Shown here one piece after another: positions 48,024 to 58,429 of a stretch of DNA of 64,000 nt. The translations under genes and the position numbers were made by a program. Source of the DNA: Dicyema japonicum (Eukaryota > Animalia > Dicyemida); contig RDEW01000028.1 in the NCBI GenBank assembly GCA_011109175.1, positions 124,001 through 188,000 of the forward strand, written 5' to 3'. The stretch's first letter is position 1; every line of letters starts with the position of its first letter. A model generated the notes under the pieces. The model searched no databases, had not been told where the DNA came from, and worked only from the letters and a program-made list of their open reading frames with translations.

Positions 48024-51000
48024 TTAGGAGAGCTCATAGGGATAGTATCTGCATGTATACGAGCCAATCTTGTTAACACAGTAATGTTGACGTGGACATT
48101 TAAACTCTCTGAGCTCACATTCATTGATGTCTAAATAATTAAGTAAGGTACCTTTGCACTCTCCACATTGGTCCATGTAAAATCCCGACAGACACTCGCA
48201 GTAGTATGACCCAGCCGTATCAACGCATTTGCTGTCCTTGGGACACTGGTTCTCAGATGTTTCGCACTCATTTATGTCTATTCAATACTACGAAAGGTAC
48301 TTTTGCACAATTTTTCAGACTTTTCGAAGCCCTCGTTGCACACACAGTCAAATCCCCCGAACGTTTCGACACATTGGGAGTTCTCGGGACAATTGTCTGT
48401 CTTTAAAGAACATTCAGGGATATCTCAAAGTCATCAAAAACCCAATAACCAACACACGTTCCATTTTCCAATTTAAAACCTTCGGGACACTTCCCTGAGC
48501 AGTTGTCACCATTTCCGACGAAACCTGTCTTGCAGTGACAACCGTGATATCCGTCTATAGTTTCACAAACAGCATCCGAGTGACACTTTGTCGAAACACA
48601 ATTTAATCTCCCATTTTTTGTGCAGTGACATTTTTCATCGCAAAGAGGGGAATAGACGGTTTCATTTGTCTGTGATTATGACTTACATTACCAGAATGTA
48701 CGAGTTCTTATAGAAGCAACCACAATCTTCAGGTTTGACGCAATCACTCCCGCTATATACATAGCCTTCCTTGCACATGCAGTCCTCGGAATCAAAGCAT
48801 ATAGGAGAATTAGGTGCACAGCTTTCTATGCATTTTCCATTAGAATATTTCCACTCCATGTTTCGGGGACATTGAACAGCTAACCAATGTTGAGGCAAGT
48901 CTACAGCATTTGGAGTACAATCCACTGTTTCTCCAAGATCCCGTTCTGTATCCAATGGAATAACAGTATTCCTCAATGACCTTTCCAAATATGCAAATGC
49001 TGGTGTTGGAATGGCACAGGTCATAAGCACATGACTTAATCAGTTCCTTTATGATATTCTCCTGCATATTACTCATGCATTGCTATATTGCTAACAAGAA
49101 TAACCTTAAATGGATCAAATGAAATTGCTTTCTGGCATATTTTAAAGTACTCCTGATTGCGAGGACATGTTTTCTTTTGCCCACATAAAACATCTTCCAA
49201 ACAATCCTTTCCCGTAATGGAGGCATCTGAGCTTGTCCACGAAAGCTCAAAGGCGTTGTGTTCCTTAAATATTTATGCTTTCATACGGCTTTGTCGCTAC
49301 ACGCATTAAAAGACCCGTGTTCAAAGTCATCAATGGGGTCATCATTTGCGTTCCCACATATCCCAGTGACATTATTGTATTTCCCAACATAAATGGAAAG
49401 AATATGGTCGGCGTCGAATTCGACGGTAAAGTCAAATTTAACGGAAATCATGACCTACTTGTGACCTCATTACTTAACCATTTTATTTTTTTGGAATAGA
49501 ATGAAGTATCCTGGGTAAATAACCGGAGAATGAACTTTCTCATAGTTTACGTAAATCTGGAAATTTCTCAGCAAATCGATCCTCTAAAAGTTACAGGTAA
49601 CACAACATCGTGGTTGTGGTATATTGTGACCCCCTGAATCCACGTGGCATTATCTGAACGCTCTATTTTTCCGTTTTCCGAGTCAATTCTGATATTGATG
49701 TAGTCTCCAATAATTTTCCACCCCTCAAGTCTGTCTTGAGACAAAATATATCGACACTTTCCTTGGAAGTGTGACCACTGGCCATCGAATAAATGTACGT
49801 GGGGATCTCCAAAGACCTTACATTCTTTAAGTTCTGCAAGTAACTAAATCGATATGTGAACTGTGGCATTGTCCTTTGTAGCCTAACCCTTTCAGCCCTT
49901 CATTGCACTGACAGTAATATTTTCCTGGGAGATTGTGACATTTGGCATTTCTGTCACAATTATGAATTTTGTCCGTGCATTCGTTTATGTCTACGAATAA
50001 CAATATATTATACCCTCGCAGGTTCCATTTACTTTTCTGTACCCTTCGTAGCATTCACACTTATAGGATCCGGGGCTATTGTCGCAAAATGAATTCTGAG
50101 GACACTTGTGACCAAAAATTCCAATTTCTTCGCACTCATTAATATCTTACAAATCATAGACACAACAGTCTACCAACACACAGTCTACCATTCCCTGTAA
50201 ATCCTCTTGCACATGAACATCTGTAACCATTCACTAGGTTTTCACAAACTGCAAATTTATCACAGTCATTGAATCCATTCTGACACTCGTCAATGTCTGT
50301 ATAAATTTAACGGTAACCGATTGGTTTATTGGAACACTGAATTGACCCAACTTTGATCTGGCTAGGGTCATCAACTGAAGTAATCGAGATGGGAATATCA
50401 GTTGGGGATCTGATAGAGAATATCCCAACATCAGAACGTGTCGCATTAACGTCAGCCATGCAATTGCACCCCCTTCAGTAAATAGGTCGATTACTTGTTC
50501 TGAAGACAAGAGCCACTGCATGCGCATTTGAAGTGCGGAAAATGTAGTTTTGGAGTCGAGTACCTTCCCATCAATTGTATTCTTAGACCCATAATTGAAT
50601 TCTTTATCCATTAATGTACAAAGTAAACCACATTCGTGCACGTGTATTTGATAGGCAGAAAGCAGTAGCTGTACATTTTGACCAAATTCCTGATTTGGTT
50701 GTGGTCAACGTTAACGTATTTTATGTTAACTTTGGTGTTTGTTACCGTCAAATATGTGGATATTTGAGTAATACCAATTCCTGCTAATAAAATCAGTGGT
50801 GACCCTTAATATTTCTGCAGTACACGTAAAATGGCTTCACATAATAAGAAGGTTGAATGAGTAGTTCCGTGTCATAGGGTAAACTTGATGTCCCCAATTC
50901 GCAGTTTTTTGGAATACCTACCTCAATGAAACCTCTACCAGTTATTTTATCAGCACAGTGGATGTCCCCCACTTTTACATTGCTATTATTAAAGCTGACA

Positions 51001-54000
51001 AACTGCAGGCCTGATATGGGCATGATGTTCCTTGGAATAAGATTCGTTGATTACTTGTTGAAGATTAATCCCCCTTCATTTGCACTTTCGTTTCTTTTAG
51101 CATCACATCGGCATTTAAAGTCAGCAGGACAGGTCTTTGTCCGGGAACATAAACAGTTTGTTGAATTCACCAAGTCTCCTCCTACCCAATATTTCAGTTT
51201 AGTCCCCTTGTAGTCAACCATCTCTACATTATTAGACAAAACTTGAGTTTTTCCACAAATATACCACAATTCCTAAATGAATGCACCAAACTCTATAACC
51301 TGCCAACAGTTATTCAAATGTTTGAGCATCTCGTGGATCTGAATGTAGTTAGCCTTCTCATAGACTATGTTGATTGTCTCGGTGGTTGATTTAGTCATAT
51401 TAACTTTTACCTACCAATTATAGCATAATCTCACAATAGTTTCGATTACGGAGTGTTTATAATTATACTGACAGCGAACACTGAATGGATCTTGTCCTAG
51501 TGCCCCATCTGGGTCTATCGTGTTGTACTCATTCGATAAGAAATTATAACTTCTTTGAGCCTGTAAGAGTTGGTTGCAGCTTTTTTGAATAACTGAAATG
51601 ATTAGTGATATCTACAAAAGCATTCCAAATCGTGTATTTTAGCCGTTACAGGTGCGGTTATCTGTTCTGCTATAAATCCTCGGATTGGTAGCTCAGATTT
51701 ATTGATCAGATATCCTTCTAAAGATTTCTCATCCCTTTTACAAAAACAATGCGTCCCCTCGCACTGTTTATTTTCTGTAGAAATTACTACCAATAAAAAC
51801 TTGAGTTTATCCAATAATCTCCCCTTTTGTTGTAAACTGTTTTCATAAAAATGTTCCTCCCAAATTGTAATTGGCTATCCCGAGGACAATTTAATAACAC
51901 TTTTTGCCGACAATATGAGGATGCCGACGTGAGTGAGGTAAGTTGGGAAGTTCTCAAATTATTATAACTGATTGATCGATTATCAGTGACTTCCATTAGG
52001 ACCTCTTTATTTATAATCTGAATTAACAGGTGGATAAAACAGTTATTGCGTGCAGGGGGTTGAGGATGATGTGACACCACACGGAAAATGGTTTCTCTGG
52101 CCCTCTCTGTCCATCCGGGTCGATGATAAGACTGTGACTTTTTGTTGGATTAAAGTGAGATTTTATTAACTCTCTTTGGCAGTCGATCGGCAAATCTACA
52201 AAGTCTATAAATAATTTACCTAGTTGTTGGTTACTGCAGACCAAATCCCCAACAACCGCATAAAGTAGTCCATCAGAGTTTATCTTGCTCAGATTAAACG
52301 TTTTAATTCCCATAATTGGCAGACGAGTATGATCAATGATGTATCCTTCATCAATATTTTCAGAATTGACATCACACATGCATTTTTGGGTTACATCTGA
52401 TGAACATCTACTATGAAGTCCACATCCACAGGATGGGTATCCATCAGCATTACCCCAGTCTACAATTACTTATATAAAATGCCATAGTTATTATTCCCAT
52501 CCGCAGAAATCCAGCTCACATGACCAGTGATTGGGAAATTACTGCATTTCAGCTTTATGTGTTGTTTGCATGATACGAATTTCGTCATTAATTGCTAGTA
52601 CATCATATCAACCAAACCTTAATCTGAGTTAGGCTTAGAAGGTAGTTGATCTTCATGGTTAGTGACGTCGCAGAACCGAAAGTGATAATCCCAGGTCCTG
52701 ACATTATTTAACTTTAATACTTGGATTCAAAATGCTTAGACCTTCATAAGAGCAATATAACTTAAAGGGCTTAAAAGGCCCGGGACCATCGGGATCAATA
52801 TAATAATAACCGCTAGGAGGAAGCTCCCCCGACTTAACCCGGAGGAAATTGATTGTATTCAAACATGAGTCATAGATATCTCCAATAACTCAGACTTTAC
52901 CATAACATTTGATTCGTGATTCTGAGAAGATTATGCTAGGAGTATTTATTTTCACAGACGGAACCGATTTGCCCAATACCGTATATATTCTAAATTCACA
53001 AACAGCTAAAACATAGTCTGTCCGGCACAGTCGCAGGTATCAGCGTCCTCGCAAAATATTTCGCTAAGTCGTTTGACGATTCTCTCTCCCGTTGGGAATG
53101 TGACATCAATGGAATCATAATCTGACAATATTAAGGGACCATACTCTTTATTGCAGATCCACATTTAAGGTGCAATTCTTGAGTGCAATACGCAGAGTTC
53201 TTTATTATTAATAAAATGTTCTCAGTGATGCTGCTCAGAGTGTAGGCCCACCATTGCTTTAAATACATTTTCTACGAATAAATCCACTATCTACCGCTAT
53301 CTTGAAATTCATAATGGCCGCAACACCGAATTCAGTTTCCTCACAGTGGACAGGGACACTCACATTTTCTATAAAATTAGACGATTACATGCCATATTTC
53401 AGAAAGTACGTATAATTCATTGGAAAGTTCTTCATTTTGTACGACAAACAGGAGGAAAAAACATCTACGGTTGCCTAAATACTAAACCATGCTTATATTG
53501 AGCACATTCCACCGGTCCTACCAAAATTCTGCCTTCGTTTGGAATTTCACTGTGAAATGAAACGATTGGAAGACTAGACTTGTTATTCTCAATTCCAAAG
53601 TCGAAAGTATTAGCCTTACTCTAATATTATAATAAACAAAAGTGGGGGACCTCACAGTTGCATTTTCTATTACTTATGCACATCCCCGTGAAGGAACAGC
53701 CACACGACCCATTTACTGCTCTTCCACCAGGACCATAGTCGAGTTTTTTTAGTTGAGAGTAGAACCCGTCGTCTGGATTTTCGAATAAACTTGAATTCTC
53801 GAAATTAAATGTTTTGTTACCTTGCATCGATATTCTAAAAACTGAGAGCAGTACTTGTTTGAGGCAATGACTTTGGTGACGAATTGAATAGAATTAAAGT
53901 AATCGAGTTTTGTGACCTTTTCCTTTATTCTCAGAGTACCCCTATTTGTGAGTCACTAAAATGACCTTCTAATGTTCATGGATGTTATTGAATGCATCTT

Positions 54001-56753
54001 TCCGTGTATACACTTGACGTACTCTGGCTGAACATTTCCACTAGAGTCCCCATCACTCCCATCGGGGTCAATTAAGGTTACCATCTCTGAGTCTCTGGTT
54101 GTTTGTTTGACCTCATCGCAATTCGATAAAATCCCTAATCTTTCATAAACTCGATTCACCAAATTGTCTGGACCCGCATTCAAGGCTATCCAACAGAACC
54201 TCATAATTTGAATTCTTGTCCTTGATATTCCCGGTAATCCCTGTAATTGGGAAGATTTTCTTGTCAATCATCAATCCCTGGTCCACTGTCCGTTCGACTC
54301 CGTGGTTAACGCAATTGCAGGGACTTTTCTTGTTAACACATGACTCATCGTATCCACATGGGCACTGAGTATTAGATTTACATTTACAAGTAACTCTGAT
54401 TTCGATCCAAGGGCATAAAAACTTTGGTCCCTCGCATTTGTGAGTGAGATGTCTGACAAATTCGATACCTTTCCTTTACAAACATATCTAACCACGTGTA
54501 ATTGTTATTTACCTTATTTTCTGTGAACAGAATACTGACGAATTCACAATCATCTGAACAGCCGGCAGATTCAACGAGTACTCCACCTTCGTAATAGTTT
54601 TTTGGATTCCGATAATCAACCTATGCGTTTTTACGAAAATCACGGATATTCCGATTCCATCACGGAAAACGCATTTTACCTATATTCAGTTTAAAATCAA
54701 CCATTTCAGCTTTATCATTGATTCTAACATTGTAGTACCCATCTCTTGGAGTCTTCACATTCTTGACAACATCATCACAGGATCCGTACAATTCTTACGA
54801 ATTTTAATCAATCGAACTTTCACATTTTCCGTTAGCATTTCGTCTCCCGTACTTGCATTTGCAAAGATATCCAGGGACAGTGTCGACGCATACTTCTTCC
54901 TCCTCACAAATATTGGACTTGCACTCATTTATATCTTTGACTCAAATATAAGATTTACTTTTGCACTCATTTTTGCCGTCCCCTTCAAATCCGACTCTGC
55001 ACTCGCAAAAGTGATTAGCACAATCCGCCAATTTGTGGCAGTCCTTATGAGACCAACAATAATTATTTTCTATTTAAAGATTTATATTTTACTAATGCAG
55101 ATTCCGTTCACTAATTCATACCCCTCGTTACATTTGCACGTGTATGACCCAATCGTGTTTAGGCAGTACGAATTTTCAGGACATTCCACAGAAGAACATT
55201 CGTTAATATCTACGATTCACAGTATTGTTCACCTCCGCAGTATTTGCTTCCATCCCCGTTGAACCCCTCTCGGCACCTGCAGGACCCAAAATGACACATC
55301 CCATATTCGCCATTGCAATCGCCGTCGTTCACACAGTGTTTTAATTCTAAGCACATAAAAGTGGTAATCTCCACCATATTCGCAAATGTAAGAATTTTGT
55401 TGGCTGCAGTCATCACTAACTGTGCTATGGTTTTCAATGGCATTGCAGAGTCCGTTCTTAGGGACAAGATCTTCACTTGATAAAATTGAAAACCTATCCA
55501 CAATTTTGTAGACTTGTGTAACTTCAATATTTTGGAGTAAAATTCTACATCCCCCATGACTCTTACGCTGGCTAATGTCATCCCCCACTTTGTGCAGTTG
55601 TTTACGCTATTTTGAAAAGTATTTGTATTAACAGCTTCTTGAAGACACTTATCTCCAAATCTAAGCTCGTGGGTTGGACACACTTTGAAATCTACGTTGA
55701 CTAATTTCACGCACATTTGACCGATTTCTTGCATATCGATTGCTTGTGGTCACTGCACACGGAAGGCGAAAATGTCCCGTTCATATAATGATAACATTTC
55801 TTGTTTGTGGGGGTATTCAAACTGTAAACTGGACCGTTTATAAATTTCACGTGGTTATTTGTTTGTAACACGTATCCTCCTTGAAGTCCAACCCAATAGG
55901 AGACATCGGAGTCACTAGAAAATTAATAGGTTTTAGACATTATCCCCCGAGAGGATAGTTCAGTCGATATGTCATCGTCAAACGATGCCAAGTCTCCCCC
56001 ATGTAAGTTACAATAGTAGAATCCAGAGAGATAATCAAATTCGTGTTTAATGGCAACATAGCAACTCCCATTAATAAGAACCCACCCATATGGACAGACG
56101 TGGGTCATCAAGGTATCTAAAATAACTTGTGTGTGTACTTATTTCACAAATAAATAATTTAGGAGTCCTGCAGTCTCCAACCCCAAATTTACCGTTATTC
56201 CCATCCAAGTATCCACATGTTTGGTTTTTTGACGAATTCTCCTCTCGTAGTTTGTTAACCCCTCCGTTTTTCCAGTATAATTTATCTAACTTATGATGAC
56301 CATTACTTATTATTAGATCTTTCCTGAGTCCAACCCAAAAGCTTTCATTTTTGTTAACAGCCTGTATGCTTTTAAAGATCTTTTCGTAATTAGTGGGGTC
56401 CGACAGGGATGCCAGACTTCCGTTGCAGGAATCATAAGCTTCTTGGTAAGTTTGTTTTTGCGAGTAAATTCTGTAGCAAATTCCGTTAAATTCCTCATAG
56501 TAAGGGGGACATTGAGCTATTGAATAAACTCACAAGTAACCATGACACCCAGTATGATTCGACCCCTTCTTCCCATCTCCTCGTAAGCCATGTTTGCATA
56601 TACACTCGAAATTACTGTCATCAATATTGACACATTTGGCAAGACTGTGACACGTGAAGGTGGCATGTATTGAACACAAGGAGTGGTCGTTGTGAATCGT
56701 AGACAAGACTTATAAATATTAAATTCCTTACAAATAATAAAAATGAATATCAT
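48024..56753 (-). CDS. Giant secreted mosaic protein (~2,500 aa): signal peptide, EGF, 3x C-type lectin, EGF array, about 7x Caspr-type fibrinogen-like modules, EGF, VWD-C8-TIL, cbEGF tail
   Basis: Where traced, removing 20-28-nt introns gives a continuous frame (roughly 40-50 introns, not all traced). Motifs: [18 protein letters not shown] (lectin), DINEC (cbEGF), IDPDG and C-x-C..C..C-x-C (Caspr module), [13 protein letters not shown] (VWD), C8 and TIL cysteine patterns. Stop ends at 48024; no transmembrane segment seen. Confidence 0.88.
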
Positions 56754-57104: not shown

Positions 57105-58150
57105 ACAGTTGAGAAAAATGTCTAGAAAGCAAAGGATACAAAGGGATGCATCTCGTCTAAAGCTCCTTACGTTCAATGCTAGAAGCTTATCTACGACCTG
57201 GTCGAGGAAGATTCTCTGTGACGACTTGGAGAGATATGACGTATCCATTGCGTGCCTACAAGAGACGAAAGTTACTTGTAGCCTTGATGAGAGTCATGGT
57301 GAATATCGAATAATATGTATACCGAGTGACTCAAAATATTATGGACTTGGATTTGCCATCCATTCAAAGTTGACAAGTGCAGTCCACCGTACATGGAGTG
57401 TAAATGACAACATCTGTGTTATACAAATCTGTCTAAACGACTTTCCTCCTTCGAAGAGCTTCTGACAATTATAAATGTTTATGAGTCACACTGCGGGAGA
57501 GTAGTGAAAGATCCGACAGAACTAGACGACTTCTATTCAGCACTGTTACGGACGTACATCAAATTTGAGTCGTCATCACTAATACTCATTGCTGGGGATT
57601 TGAATGCGAAAATCGGGATGAAGAATAACCCGGATGATGTTTTCTTAGGAGAACATGGACGTGGAATAAGAAACCTACCCAGGACAATACTTGGTCACTT
57701 TTGTATGGCAAACAACTTTTTCCTATGTAATACTGCATTTACGCATCCTGCCACAAAACTACGTGGATGGGGAAGCGAAGGAACTCAGAGGGAAAGCTGG
57801 TCCCAATATACAATCAAATAGATTATGTCATACGCCGGGCTAAAGACAAACACCTTCTAGTAAACGCACGTTCATATGAAGGCTCGACGACTGTCAGCGA
57901 CCACAAGATGGTTATTGCGACCTTCACTCTGAAAAAACATGCCATCAAATGCAAGAATGCCAAAAATCACGAATTTGAGAAAATCAGAGGCGACTGAAAG
58001 GCTGATTTCCCAACCGGAGACTACTGAGAGATGTCAACAATACATTCAGACTCATATGCAGAACGCATTGGTGGATACCTCGTTAGAAGACGCTTGGAAA
58101 CGCAAAAAAACACCATCAACGAAGCTGCTGAGGCATGTCTTGGCAAAAAG
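57105..58150 (+). mobile_element. RTE-like LINE 5' fragment (APE endonuclease plus linker)
   Basis: LLTFNARSL, IACLQETK, AGDLNAKIG, YNQIDY and VSDHKMV motifs. Followed at 58150-58290 by a 3' end resembling the 8980-10135 LINE. Confidence 0.8.
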
Positions 58151-58429
58151 AAAAATTCAGGCAGCCGTCCTGTACGTTCATGCTCGGGCACTAAGGAGAA
58201 CACCGAGAAAAGATGAGATCGCTGTTAGAATGCATCGGGATCACGTGATGATTAGTTTGGTTTTTACCGTTGTCTTGGGTTGTTAAATAAAAAAATAATT
58301 ACCTTCGCAAACAGAAAGGCAGCAAATTATTTTTTCGGATTATTGAGGGTTTACTGTATTGGAATGAGGAATACTATATTCTGAAGACAAACATATAGAA
58401 ATAGCCATAGCTAACAATTATTATTATTA

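Follow-up and report, generated by a model that had tools for sequence, protein, structure and literature searches.

Among proteins whose function has been studied, the nearest to the product of the gene analyzed here are cohesive proteins of temporary bioadhesives. Mlig-ap1 of a flatworm contains a C-type lectin domain, a VWD-C8-TIL assembly and 17 calcium-binding EGF domains (cbEGFs); it is cohesive, and adhesion suffers when it is knocked down by RNA interference (PMC6410801). The footprints of sea stars contain Sfp1 and Sfp2, of which Sfp1 is reported to self-cleave into subunits before secretion (PMC9382459), and the limpet pedal-mucus protein P-vulgata_2 has 2,500 amino acids (aa), a vWFD domain, 11 EGFs, 2 Kazal domains, 1 TSP1 domain and 7.8% Cys (PMC7333891). 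We analyzed a single gene in a stretch of 64,000 nucleotides (nt) of Dicyema japonicum DNA (contig RDEW01000028.1, positions 124,001 to 188,000), which we call the window and to which all coordinates refer unless another contig is given. D. japonicum is a parasite of the octopus kidney, and dicyemids have about 5,000 genes. Our reading, to which we assign a probability of roughly 60%, is that this gene is the dicyemid orthologue of a mollusc protein family, with a triplet of lectin domains inserted and a C-terminal tail lost, and that its product would be secreted and would cross-link, as a cohesive or adhesive protein, an extracellular coat or a layer of adhesive. As judged by sequence comparison, the conserved core of the protein is known in molluscs though unstudied, and the lectin triplet and the lost tail set the Dicyema version apart.

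Gene structure and predicted product

The gene lies on the minus strand, where its ATG (56753) and its stop codon (48026-48024) enclose about 8.7 kb. These are exactly the limits, 48024-56753, that an earlier reading made from the letters of the DNA (the original prediction) had assigned to a giant secreted mosaic protein. That reading had also called the frame intact where traced, which holds after the removal of 47 micro-introns and does not hold for the uninterrupted DNA, where an open reading frame (ORF) search of the region found no long ORF (longest 174 aa). Translation of the plus strand of the region yields stops only, and the minus strand carries a dense run of short open pieces with the cysteine patterns of EGF, C-type lectin, VWD and TIL domains. 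At the 5' end, adjacent open pieces are linked by GT..AG introns of just 23 and 24 nt; a splice model with a minimum intron of 35 nt, which was over-spliced (1,657 aa) and cut through domains, was dropped once these introns had been seen. The model used here was obtained by dynamic programming that permits micro-introns, with the middle exon of module 1 (54513-54679) set by hand from a motif common to the other modules and a profile match. It contains 48 exons and 47 introns and gives a product of 2,522 aa in one frame without a stop. All but one of the introns measure 20-30 nt (46/47, mode 23) and the remaining one 60 nt; splice sites are GT-AG in 46/47 and GC-AG in 1/47, the lone GC-AG intron (23 nt, 52460-52482, minus strand) being the sole way to carry the frame from exon 26 into exon 27. 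Some 30 nt past the stop codon there is an ATTAAA.

As a chance control the threading was run without its codon-usage term, and the true strand scored +198. The opposite strand scored -123, shuffles came out between -140 and -215, and elsewhere in the window the scores ranged from -146 to +30. The low scores of the Dicyema modules on the family profile (1-49 bits, against mostly about 50-155 bits for the mollusc modules described below), the degeneracy of module 3 and three ambiguous splice choices could also be read as signs of a decaying or unexpressed relic, whose intactness would then be an artefact of flexible intron threading. The ambiguous places are the 60-nt intron of module 1 (54453-54512), parts of module 3, and the intron inside lectin domain 3, which measures 26 nt or, in an alternative reading that retains a WIG motif, 20 nt. 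We consider such a relic very unlikely: 47 consecutive introns restore one frame over the entire length, the threading breaks down when applied to the opposite strand or to shuffles, the EGF, C-type lectin, VWD and TIL cysteine patterns are retained, and fast sequence evolution is reported to be general in dicyemids (PMC6543705). Dicyemids are also reported to have lost most of their extracellular matrix (ECM) genes (PMC6543705), and that a gene of this size was kept despite this loss argues for a function. On its sequence, the locus is a single intact nuclear gene, and thus one eukaryotic gene and not the candidate new system as which it had been put forward.

Introns shorter than 30 nt have been reported only for D. 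japonicum and for myxobolid myxozoans, in a study whose single newly assembled myxozoan genome has 29% GC (PMC13644364). The D. japonicum genome was described as 67.5 Mb in 377 scaffolds with a GC content of 36.7%, 49% repeats, many LINEs and very short introns (PMC6736024); our genome-wide searches covered an assembly whose 377 contigs sum to 67,542,437 bases. GC content in the window is about 37%, and pieces of LINEs and SINEs occur in it along with assembly gaps. A myxozoan origin of the tiny introns was rejected on the GC content, on the assembly statistics and because the best protein matches are spiralian. Immediately upstream of the gene, at 57109-58286 on the plus strand, we observed fragments of ORFs that begin like an AP endonuclease, as LINE retrotransposons typically do, which is consistent with the repeat content reported for the genome.

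Phase-1 introns at domain boundaries are the classical signature of exon shuffling. In the gene, 25/47 introns are in phase 1, and 17 of the 20 unit boundaries fall at phase-1 introns, among them those that flank each lectin domain and each EGF exon on either side; the exceptions are the boundaries between modules 4 and 5 and between modules 6 and 7, which lie inside exons, and the VWD/C8 boundary, which is in phase 0. With phase-1 introns around the units, insertion of a lectin triplet into the intron after the first EGF would be straightforward. The exon-shuffling layout thus persists although the introns shrank to about 23 nt.

The predicted product (about 285 kDa, pI 6.6, 7.3% Cys, 29 N-glycosylation sequons) begins with a signal peptide, one EGF, three C-type lectin domains and four EGFs, continues with seven Caspr-type modules and three cbEGFs, and ends with VWD-C8-TIL, a Cys-rich/EGF stretch and three more cbEGFs. 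All searches were done exon by exon, and the Pfam scan covered 27 exon pieces that represent most of the coding sequence, not all of it. The Cys-rich stretch, the terminal EGF and the three last cbEGFs were read from their cysteine pattern, from DINEC-type motifs and from tblastn, in which the orthologues' cbEGFs match 48024-48424. The product starts with a short hydrophobic leader at the position of the orthologues' signal peptides, no transmembrane-like segment was found in the product, and the C-terminus is not hydrophobic; together with the Pfam domains, this bears out the original prediction of a secreted, Cys-rich lectin/EGF/VWD mosaic without a membrane anchor. The gene has one VWD, with a GDPH motif at its very start (residue 1990; 49799-49810, minus strand). 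There was no Pfam match to F5/8C or Laminin_G in the exon pieces scanned and no Gly-X-Y repeat in the gene model, and the 4.5 kb between the EGF arrays received no Pfam assignment save one match to COLFI below threshold (best 11.8 bits, cut-off 26.2). In the ESM Atlas recognition was low and the leads were unrelated LRR proteins, so that this search was disregarded.

Mollusc orthologues and the repeated module

When 1.84 billion representative proteins were searched with HMMER for a 148-aa module exon, 54 matches at E <= 1e-3 were returned, the best with 36% identity. No D. japonicum protein of the locus was found among these representative proteins, and the best identity was 36-46%. The top module-exon matches were proteins of 2,525-2,659 aa from Mercenaria mercenaria (XP_053408175.1, LOC123560993), Dreissena polymorpha (XP_052258852.1, LOC127863381), Lottia gigantea (XP_009046459.1, LOTGIDRAFT_230443) and Babylonia areolata (LOC143276534), together with a 2,604-aa protein from assembled sequencing runs. 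The mollusc proteins are all labelled uncharacterised or hypothetical, and Pfam places in them, in this order, EGFs, a gap, cbEGFs, VWD, TIL and cbEGFs. The module profile described below identifies exactly seven modules in each of the family members P0001, P0009, P0011, P0077, P0018 and P0069. By tblastn the orthologues are collinear with the Dicyema gene from the first EGF to the last cbEGF at about 25-36% identity: residues 19-71 of P0001, the best match of the search, align with the N-terminus and first EGF (56703-56545) at 45% identity, and the three cbEGFs, VWD-C8-TIL and the following cbEGFs appear in the same order by both Pfam and tblastn. The mollusc proteins of about 2,600 aa therefore have, like the Dicyema protein, a signal peptide with EGF, an EGF array, seven modules, three cbEGFs, VWD-C8-TIL and terminal cbEGFs. 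We regard this as orthology-grade evidence, and on these sequence comparisons the Dicyema gene is orthologous to the mollusc proteins. The combination of domains, which had been thought unfamiliar, is thus not without precedent: its seven-module core exists in collinear orthologues in molluscs, none of them characterised.

Two differences separate the Dicyema gene from its orthologues. The mollusc proteins are without C-type lectin domains, and the lectin triplet (56516-55375) falls by tblastn between residues 71 and 73 of P0001; its position between residues that are adjacent in the orthologues indicates that either the dicyemid line gained the triplet or other lines lost it. The mollusc proteins also have about 360 aa more at the C-terminus, a tail (Kazal-like, TSP1, cystine knot) in which the Kazal domain was confirmed by Pfam. 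In the Dicyema gene the stop codon directly follows the last cbEGF, and no match to the Kazal-TSP1-cystine-knot tail was found in the window or in the whole Dicyema genome.

The seven modules were delimited with a profile, A2, built from ten single-module proteins of other species. Matches to A2 on the exon pieces of the minus strand recur in the order N part, middle, C part, and this periodicity points to seven modules, of which module 3 is degenerate. A2 gives no N-part match in modules 1 and 3 and no C-part match in module 3, and its matches to the N part of module 7 and to the second C piece of module 6 are at chance level, so that these parts were placed by motif. The original prediction of about seven Caspr-type modules agrees with these seven periodic sets of matches and with the relation to contactin-associated proteins. 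An exon of the gene matches the Trichoplax contactin-associated-protein-like P0081 by BLASTP with E 3e-11 (C-terminal half) and 1e-4 (N-terminal motif), the module profile reaches 210 bits on that protein, and hhalign of a module exon against the ten-protein single-module profile gives a probability of 97.8%. The automatic names of short single-module matches include 'neurexin-4-like' for one from the crinoid Anneissia and 'contactin-associated protein-like 2' for one from amphioxus, and one matched fragment, from Trichoplax 'contactin-associated protein-like 5', has the module among laminin-G domains. The whole-assembly search indicates that the module is unique to this gene in the Dicyema genome.

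Table 1. Features of the Dicyema gene in window coordinates, with the matches and readings that define them
Feature	Position	Strand	Evidence and remarks
Exon 1: ATG and first 7 codons of signal peptide	56732-56753	-	continues after a 23-nt intron into exon 2
Signal peptide end and EGF1	56541-56708	-	Pfam EGF_3 3.2e-7, EGF 1.7e-5
C-type lectin-like domain 1	56139-56516	-	one exon, phase-1 introns both sides; Lectin_C 3.3e-10, positions 2-106/107
C-type lectin-like domain 2	55715-56116	-	two exons; Lectin_C 1.2e-3 (C half), UL45/CTLD 7e-3 (N half)
C-type lectin-like domain 3	55375-55691	-	two exons; Lectin_C 9e-4 (N half); C half by sequence reading
Four EGF/cbEGF	54818-55346	-	one exon each, phase-1 bounded; EGF_CA 4.8e-11, 8.5e-5; EGF_3 4e-3
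Module 1	54160-54793	-	A2 middle 54512-54598; C part 54167-54373, 6.9e-9
Module 2	53488-54134	-	A2 N 4.6e-5, middle 1.7e-3, C 9e-4 (second C piece 0.94), in order
Module 3, most degenerate	52901-53464	-	A2 middle only, 0.013; Cys pattern and motifs read
Module 4, contains GC-AG intron	52227-52879	-	A2 N 3.3e-5, middle 1.7e-4, C 6.7e-14; hhalign 97.8%
Module 5, begins inside exon 27	51616-52190	-	A2 N 9.3e-8, middle 5e-4, C 0.039
Module 6	50940-51592	-	A2 N 6.7e-7, C 4.7e-9, middle weak (1.1); tblastn to P0001 residues 1173-1411, E 1e-22
Module 7	50318-50912	-	A2 middle 1.1e-3, C 0.12; tblastn to P0001 residues 1522-1711
Three cbEGF	49862-50296	-	one exon each; EGF_CA 1.4e-8, 5.4e-10, 2.1e-9
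VWD	49287-49833	-	three exons, GDPH at start; Pfam VWD 4.5e-9 (positions 1-67), 3.5e-5 (104-150)
C8 region	48905-49263	-	Pfam C8 0.016, weak; collinear with VWD-to-TIL interval of orthologues
TIL	48692-48879	-	Pfam TIL 3.4e-5
Cys-rich stretch and one EGF	48450-48669	-	cysteine pattern; tblastn to P0001 residues 2073-2121
Three terminal cbEGF and stop (48024-48026)	48024-48423	-	sequence; tblastn to cbEGFs of P0001 and P0077

The original prediction described the modules as fibrinogen-like, and this description stands for their N-terminal subdomain and not for the modelled fold. In homologues Pfam Fibrinogen_C covers profile positions 2-59 only, that is the N-terminal 60 residues or so, and a profile search of the Protein Data Bank (PDB) gave fibrinogen beta (E 1.5e-4) and, less strongly but over a greater length, the C-propeptide of collagen I; nothing useful came from PDB sequences when two module exons were compared with them by phmmer. 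A complete Fibrinogen_C domain including the ligand-binding P subdomain was not found in the module with the Pfam and PDB profiles, the fold being judged on a homologue. The AlphaFold model of that homologue, the crinoid single-module protein P0041 (mean pLDDT 88, >95 across the domain), aligns with procollagen C-propeptides at a Foldseek E of about 1e-8 and Z 15.4-15.9 over about 180/200 residues (rmsd 3.6 Å), and reaches a Z of about 7 with ficolins, tachylectin and fibrinogen. Because the model is closer to the procollagen C-propeptide than to fibrinogen, the Caspr-type module is best described as COLFI-fold, a description modelled on the crinoid homologue and not on the Dicyema modules. 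It suggests that the 'fibrinogen-like' domain of Caspr itself may be structurally closer to the collagen C-propeptide; our literature search found no published link between the two.

The fold also bears on whether the protein could be a soluble pattern-recognition or immune lectin of the FREP or ficolin type that binds microbes. Such a protein would fit the three C-type lectin-like domains and the likeness to fibrinogen-related domains, whose N-terminal subdomain is matched in Pfam and PDB profile searches, but the modules are not full fibrinogen-related domains, the modelled fold favors COLFI over ficolins and fibrinogen, the lectin domains lack canonical sugar-binding motifs, and molluscs have the same core without lectin domains. 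We find an immune lectin of this kind highly improbable.

Several further proteins with the module, or part of it, were observed. Fish proteins named 'versican core protein-like' (sturgeon and bichir; P0008, P0014) combine two modules with Link, CUB and SRCR domains. In a 3,748-aa protein of Acanthaster (P0020) three modules occur with discoidin, SUEL-lectin and VWD-C8-TIL domains, much as the domains listed for Sfp1; neither its accession nor that of the Lottia protein was found in any paper by our literature search. A 'fibrinogen-like YCDxxxxGGGW domain' protein from a Bacteroidales metagenome-assembled genome (P0013/P0091) matches the N-terminal motif only (query residues 97-134), and the match probably reflects the shared subdomain and not the full module.

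The lectin and VWD profiles were also matched elsewhere in the Dicyema genome. Lectin_C has at least 51 matches, some of them clustered (e.g. C1:949-989 kb, C35:111-125 kb, C339), and D. japonicum seems to possess a large family of C-type lectin-like domains. The only VWD locus besides the present gene is C190:910347-913739 (minus strand), where at least three VWD matches within 3.4 kb probably belong to one multi-VWD gene.

Proposed role

Tandem cbEGFs form rigid rods stabilised by Ca2+, VWD-C8-TIL assemblies mediate homotypic and disulfide-linked association, and GDPH at the start of VWD self-cleaves in FCGBP, MUC2 and RGM. On this background we propose that the Dicyema protein, with its predicted signal peptide and no anchor, would be exported; that its runs of cbEGFs would act as stiff spacers; that the seven globular modules and the single D assembly would make protein-protein contacts, the D assembly pairing molecules; and that the lectin triplet would tie the protein to glycoconjugates, whose glycans may be those of the parasite's own surface or of the host renal epithelium. 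The combined effect would be that of a cohesive multivalent cross-linker, which would act in an extracellular coat or an adhesive layer much as cohesive proteins do in temporary bioadhesives.

Several points weigh against this proposal. The role is predicted from sequence, and the splice model behind it is computational, with the three ambiguous spots named above. As read from the sequence, the lectin domains have neither the EPN/QPD nor the WND motif that is canonical for sugar binding, so that glycan binding is not assured. Polymerisation of the mucin or VWF type requires several D assemblies and a cystine knot; with one D assembly and no cystine knot, linear polymers of that type are not expected. 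The polymer-forming role of the original prediction is accordingly weak, and a spore or cyst wall, which it had also named, is without support. The orthologues occur in free-living molluscs, which means that the ancestral role was not parasitism. Finally, the likeness of the limpet protein P-vulgata_2 to the mollusc orthologues is one of size and listed domains alone.

The mollusc orthologues are also relevant to a different role. The same seven-module core in free-living animals, and a vocabulary of cbEGF, VWD and COLFI-like domains that is typical of ECM, would fit an internal structural matrix protein, conserved in spiralians for the cohesion of the animal's own tissues (e.g. of the axial cell with the peripheral cells) and with no role in host or surface adhesion, and, since most ECM genes are reported lost in dicyemids (PMC6543705), a retained one may be essential to the body. 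The lineage-specific gain of the lectin domains and loss of the cystine-knot tail point instead to a changed partner or mode of assembly, however, and the number of C-type lectin matches in so small a genome suggests a glycan-directed surface biology. An internal matrix role is in our view possible though rather unlikely.

A narrower version of the cross-linker reading, which we hold as tentative and regard as unlikely, is that an ancestral spiralian mucus or adhesive protein was re-tooled as a host-attachment glue. The lectin triplet would then bind cephalopod renal glycans, and loss of the knot would have swapped covalent polymers for lectin-glycan cross-links. If this were true, the gene would be the main molecular basis by which an animal of about 30 cells without adhesive glands holds on in flowing urine, and the family would reveal a widespread and unrecognised metazoan domain, the 'fibrinogen-like' module of Caspr as a free-standing COLFI-fold unit. 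For the cross-linker reading at large, the gene offers a concrete candidate for the parasite's self-coating or its grip on the host kidney. It also draws attention to an unstudied family with seven putative COLFI-fold modules that extends from molluscs to dicyemids and may include a limpet adhesive-mucus protein.

Comparison with named systems

Caspr, contactin-associated proteins and neurexin IV share the 'fibrinogen-like' module with the Dicyema protein, and in the Trichoplax contactin-associated protein and the fragment P0036 the module adjoins laminin-G domains. Unlike the Dicyema protein, Caspr is anchored in the membrane and has a cytoplasmic tail, and its single module stands between discoidin and laminin-G domains. 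The C-propeptide of fibrillar procollagens (COLFI) is the best structural match to the module, on the model of P0041; it differs in that it adjoins a collagen triple helix and is a trimerising terminal domain, whereas the Dicyema modules are in tandem, and the identity is about 15-18%. Zonadhesin, FCGBP, the gel-forming mucins and VWF have, like the Dicyema protein, VWD-C8-TIL with GDPH at the start of VWD, but in 3-13 cassettes as opposed to one, and compared with the mucin/VWF class the Dicyema protein is without a cystine knot and without a mucin (Pro/Thr/Ser-rich) domain.

The cohesive proteins of temporary bioadhesives (Mlig-ap1, Sfp1/Sfp2 and P-vulgata_1/_2) form a functional class in which homology is not implied and the domain order differs from that of the Dicyema protein. 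None of them has been reported with seven COLFI-like modules; Mlig-ap1 differs from the Dicyema protein in its huge Lys/Arg-rich regions, and Sfp1 in its discoidin and galactose-binding lectin domains. The giant Acanthaster protein with three modules is likened to Sfp1 by its domain list only. Sfp1 does share with the Dicyema protein a GDPH-type self-cleavage site, and the class as a whole shares with it a very large size, secretion, a high Cys content and the combination of lectin domains, VWD-C8-TIL and EGF arrays. The adhesive or matrix role named in the original prediction therefore has its best analogy here, and after the example of Mlig-ap1, Sfp1 and the limpet mucus proteins, the most likely role of the Dicyema protein would be that of a cohesive or adhesive matrix glycoprotein.

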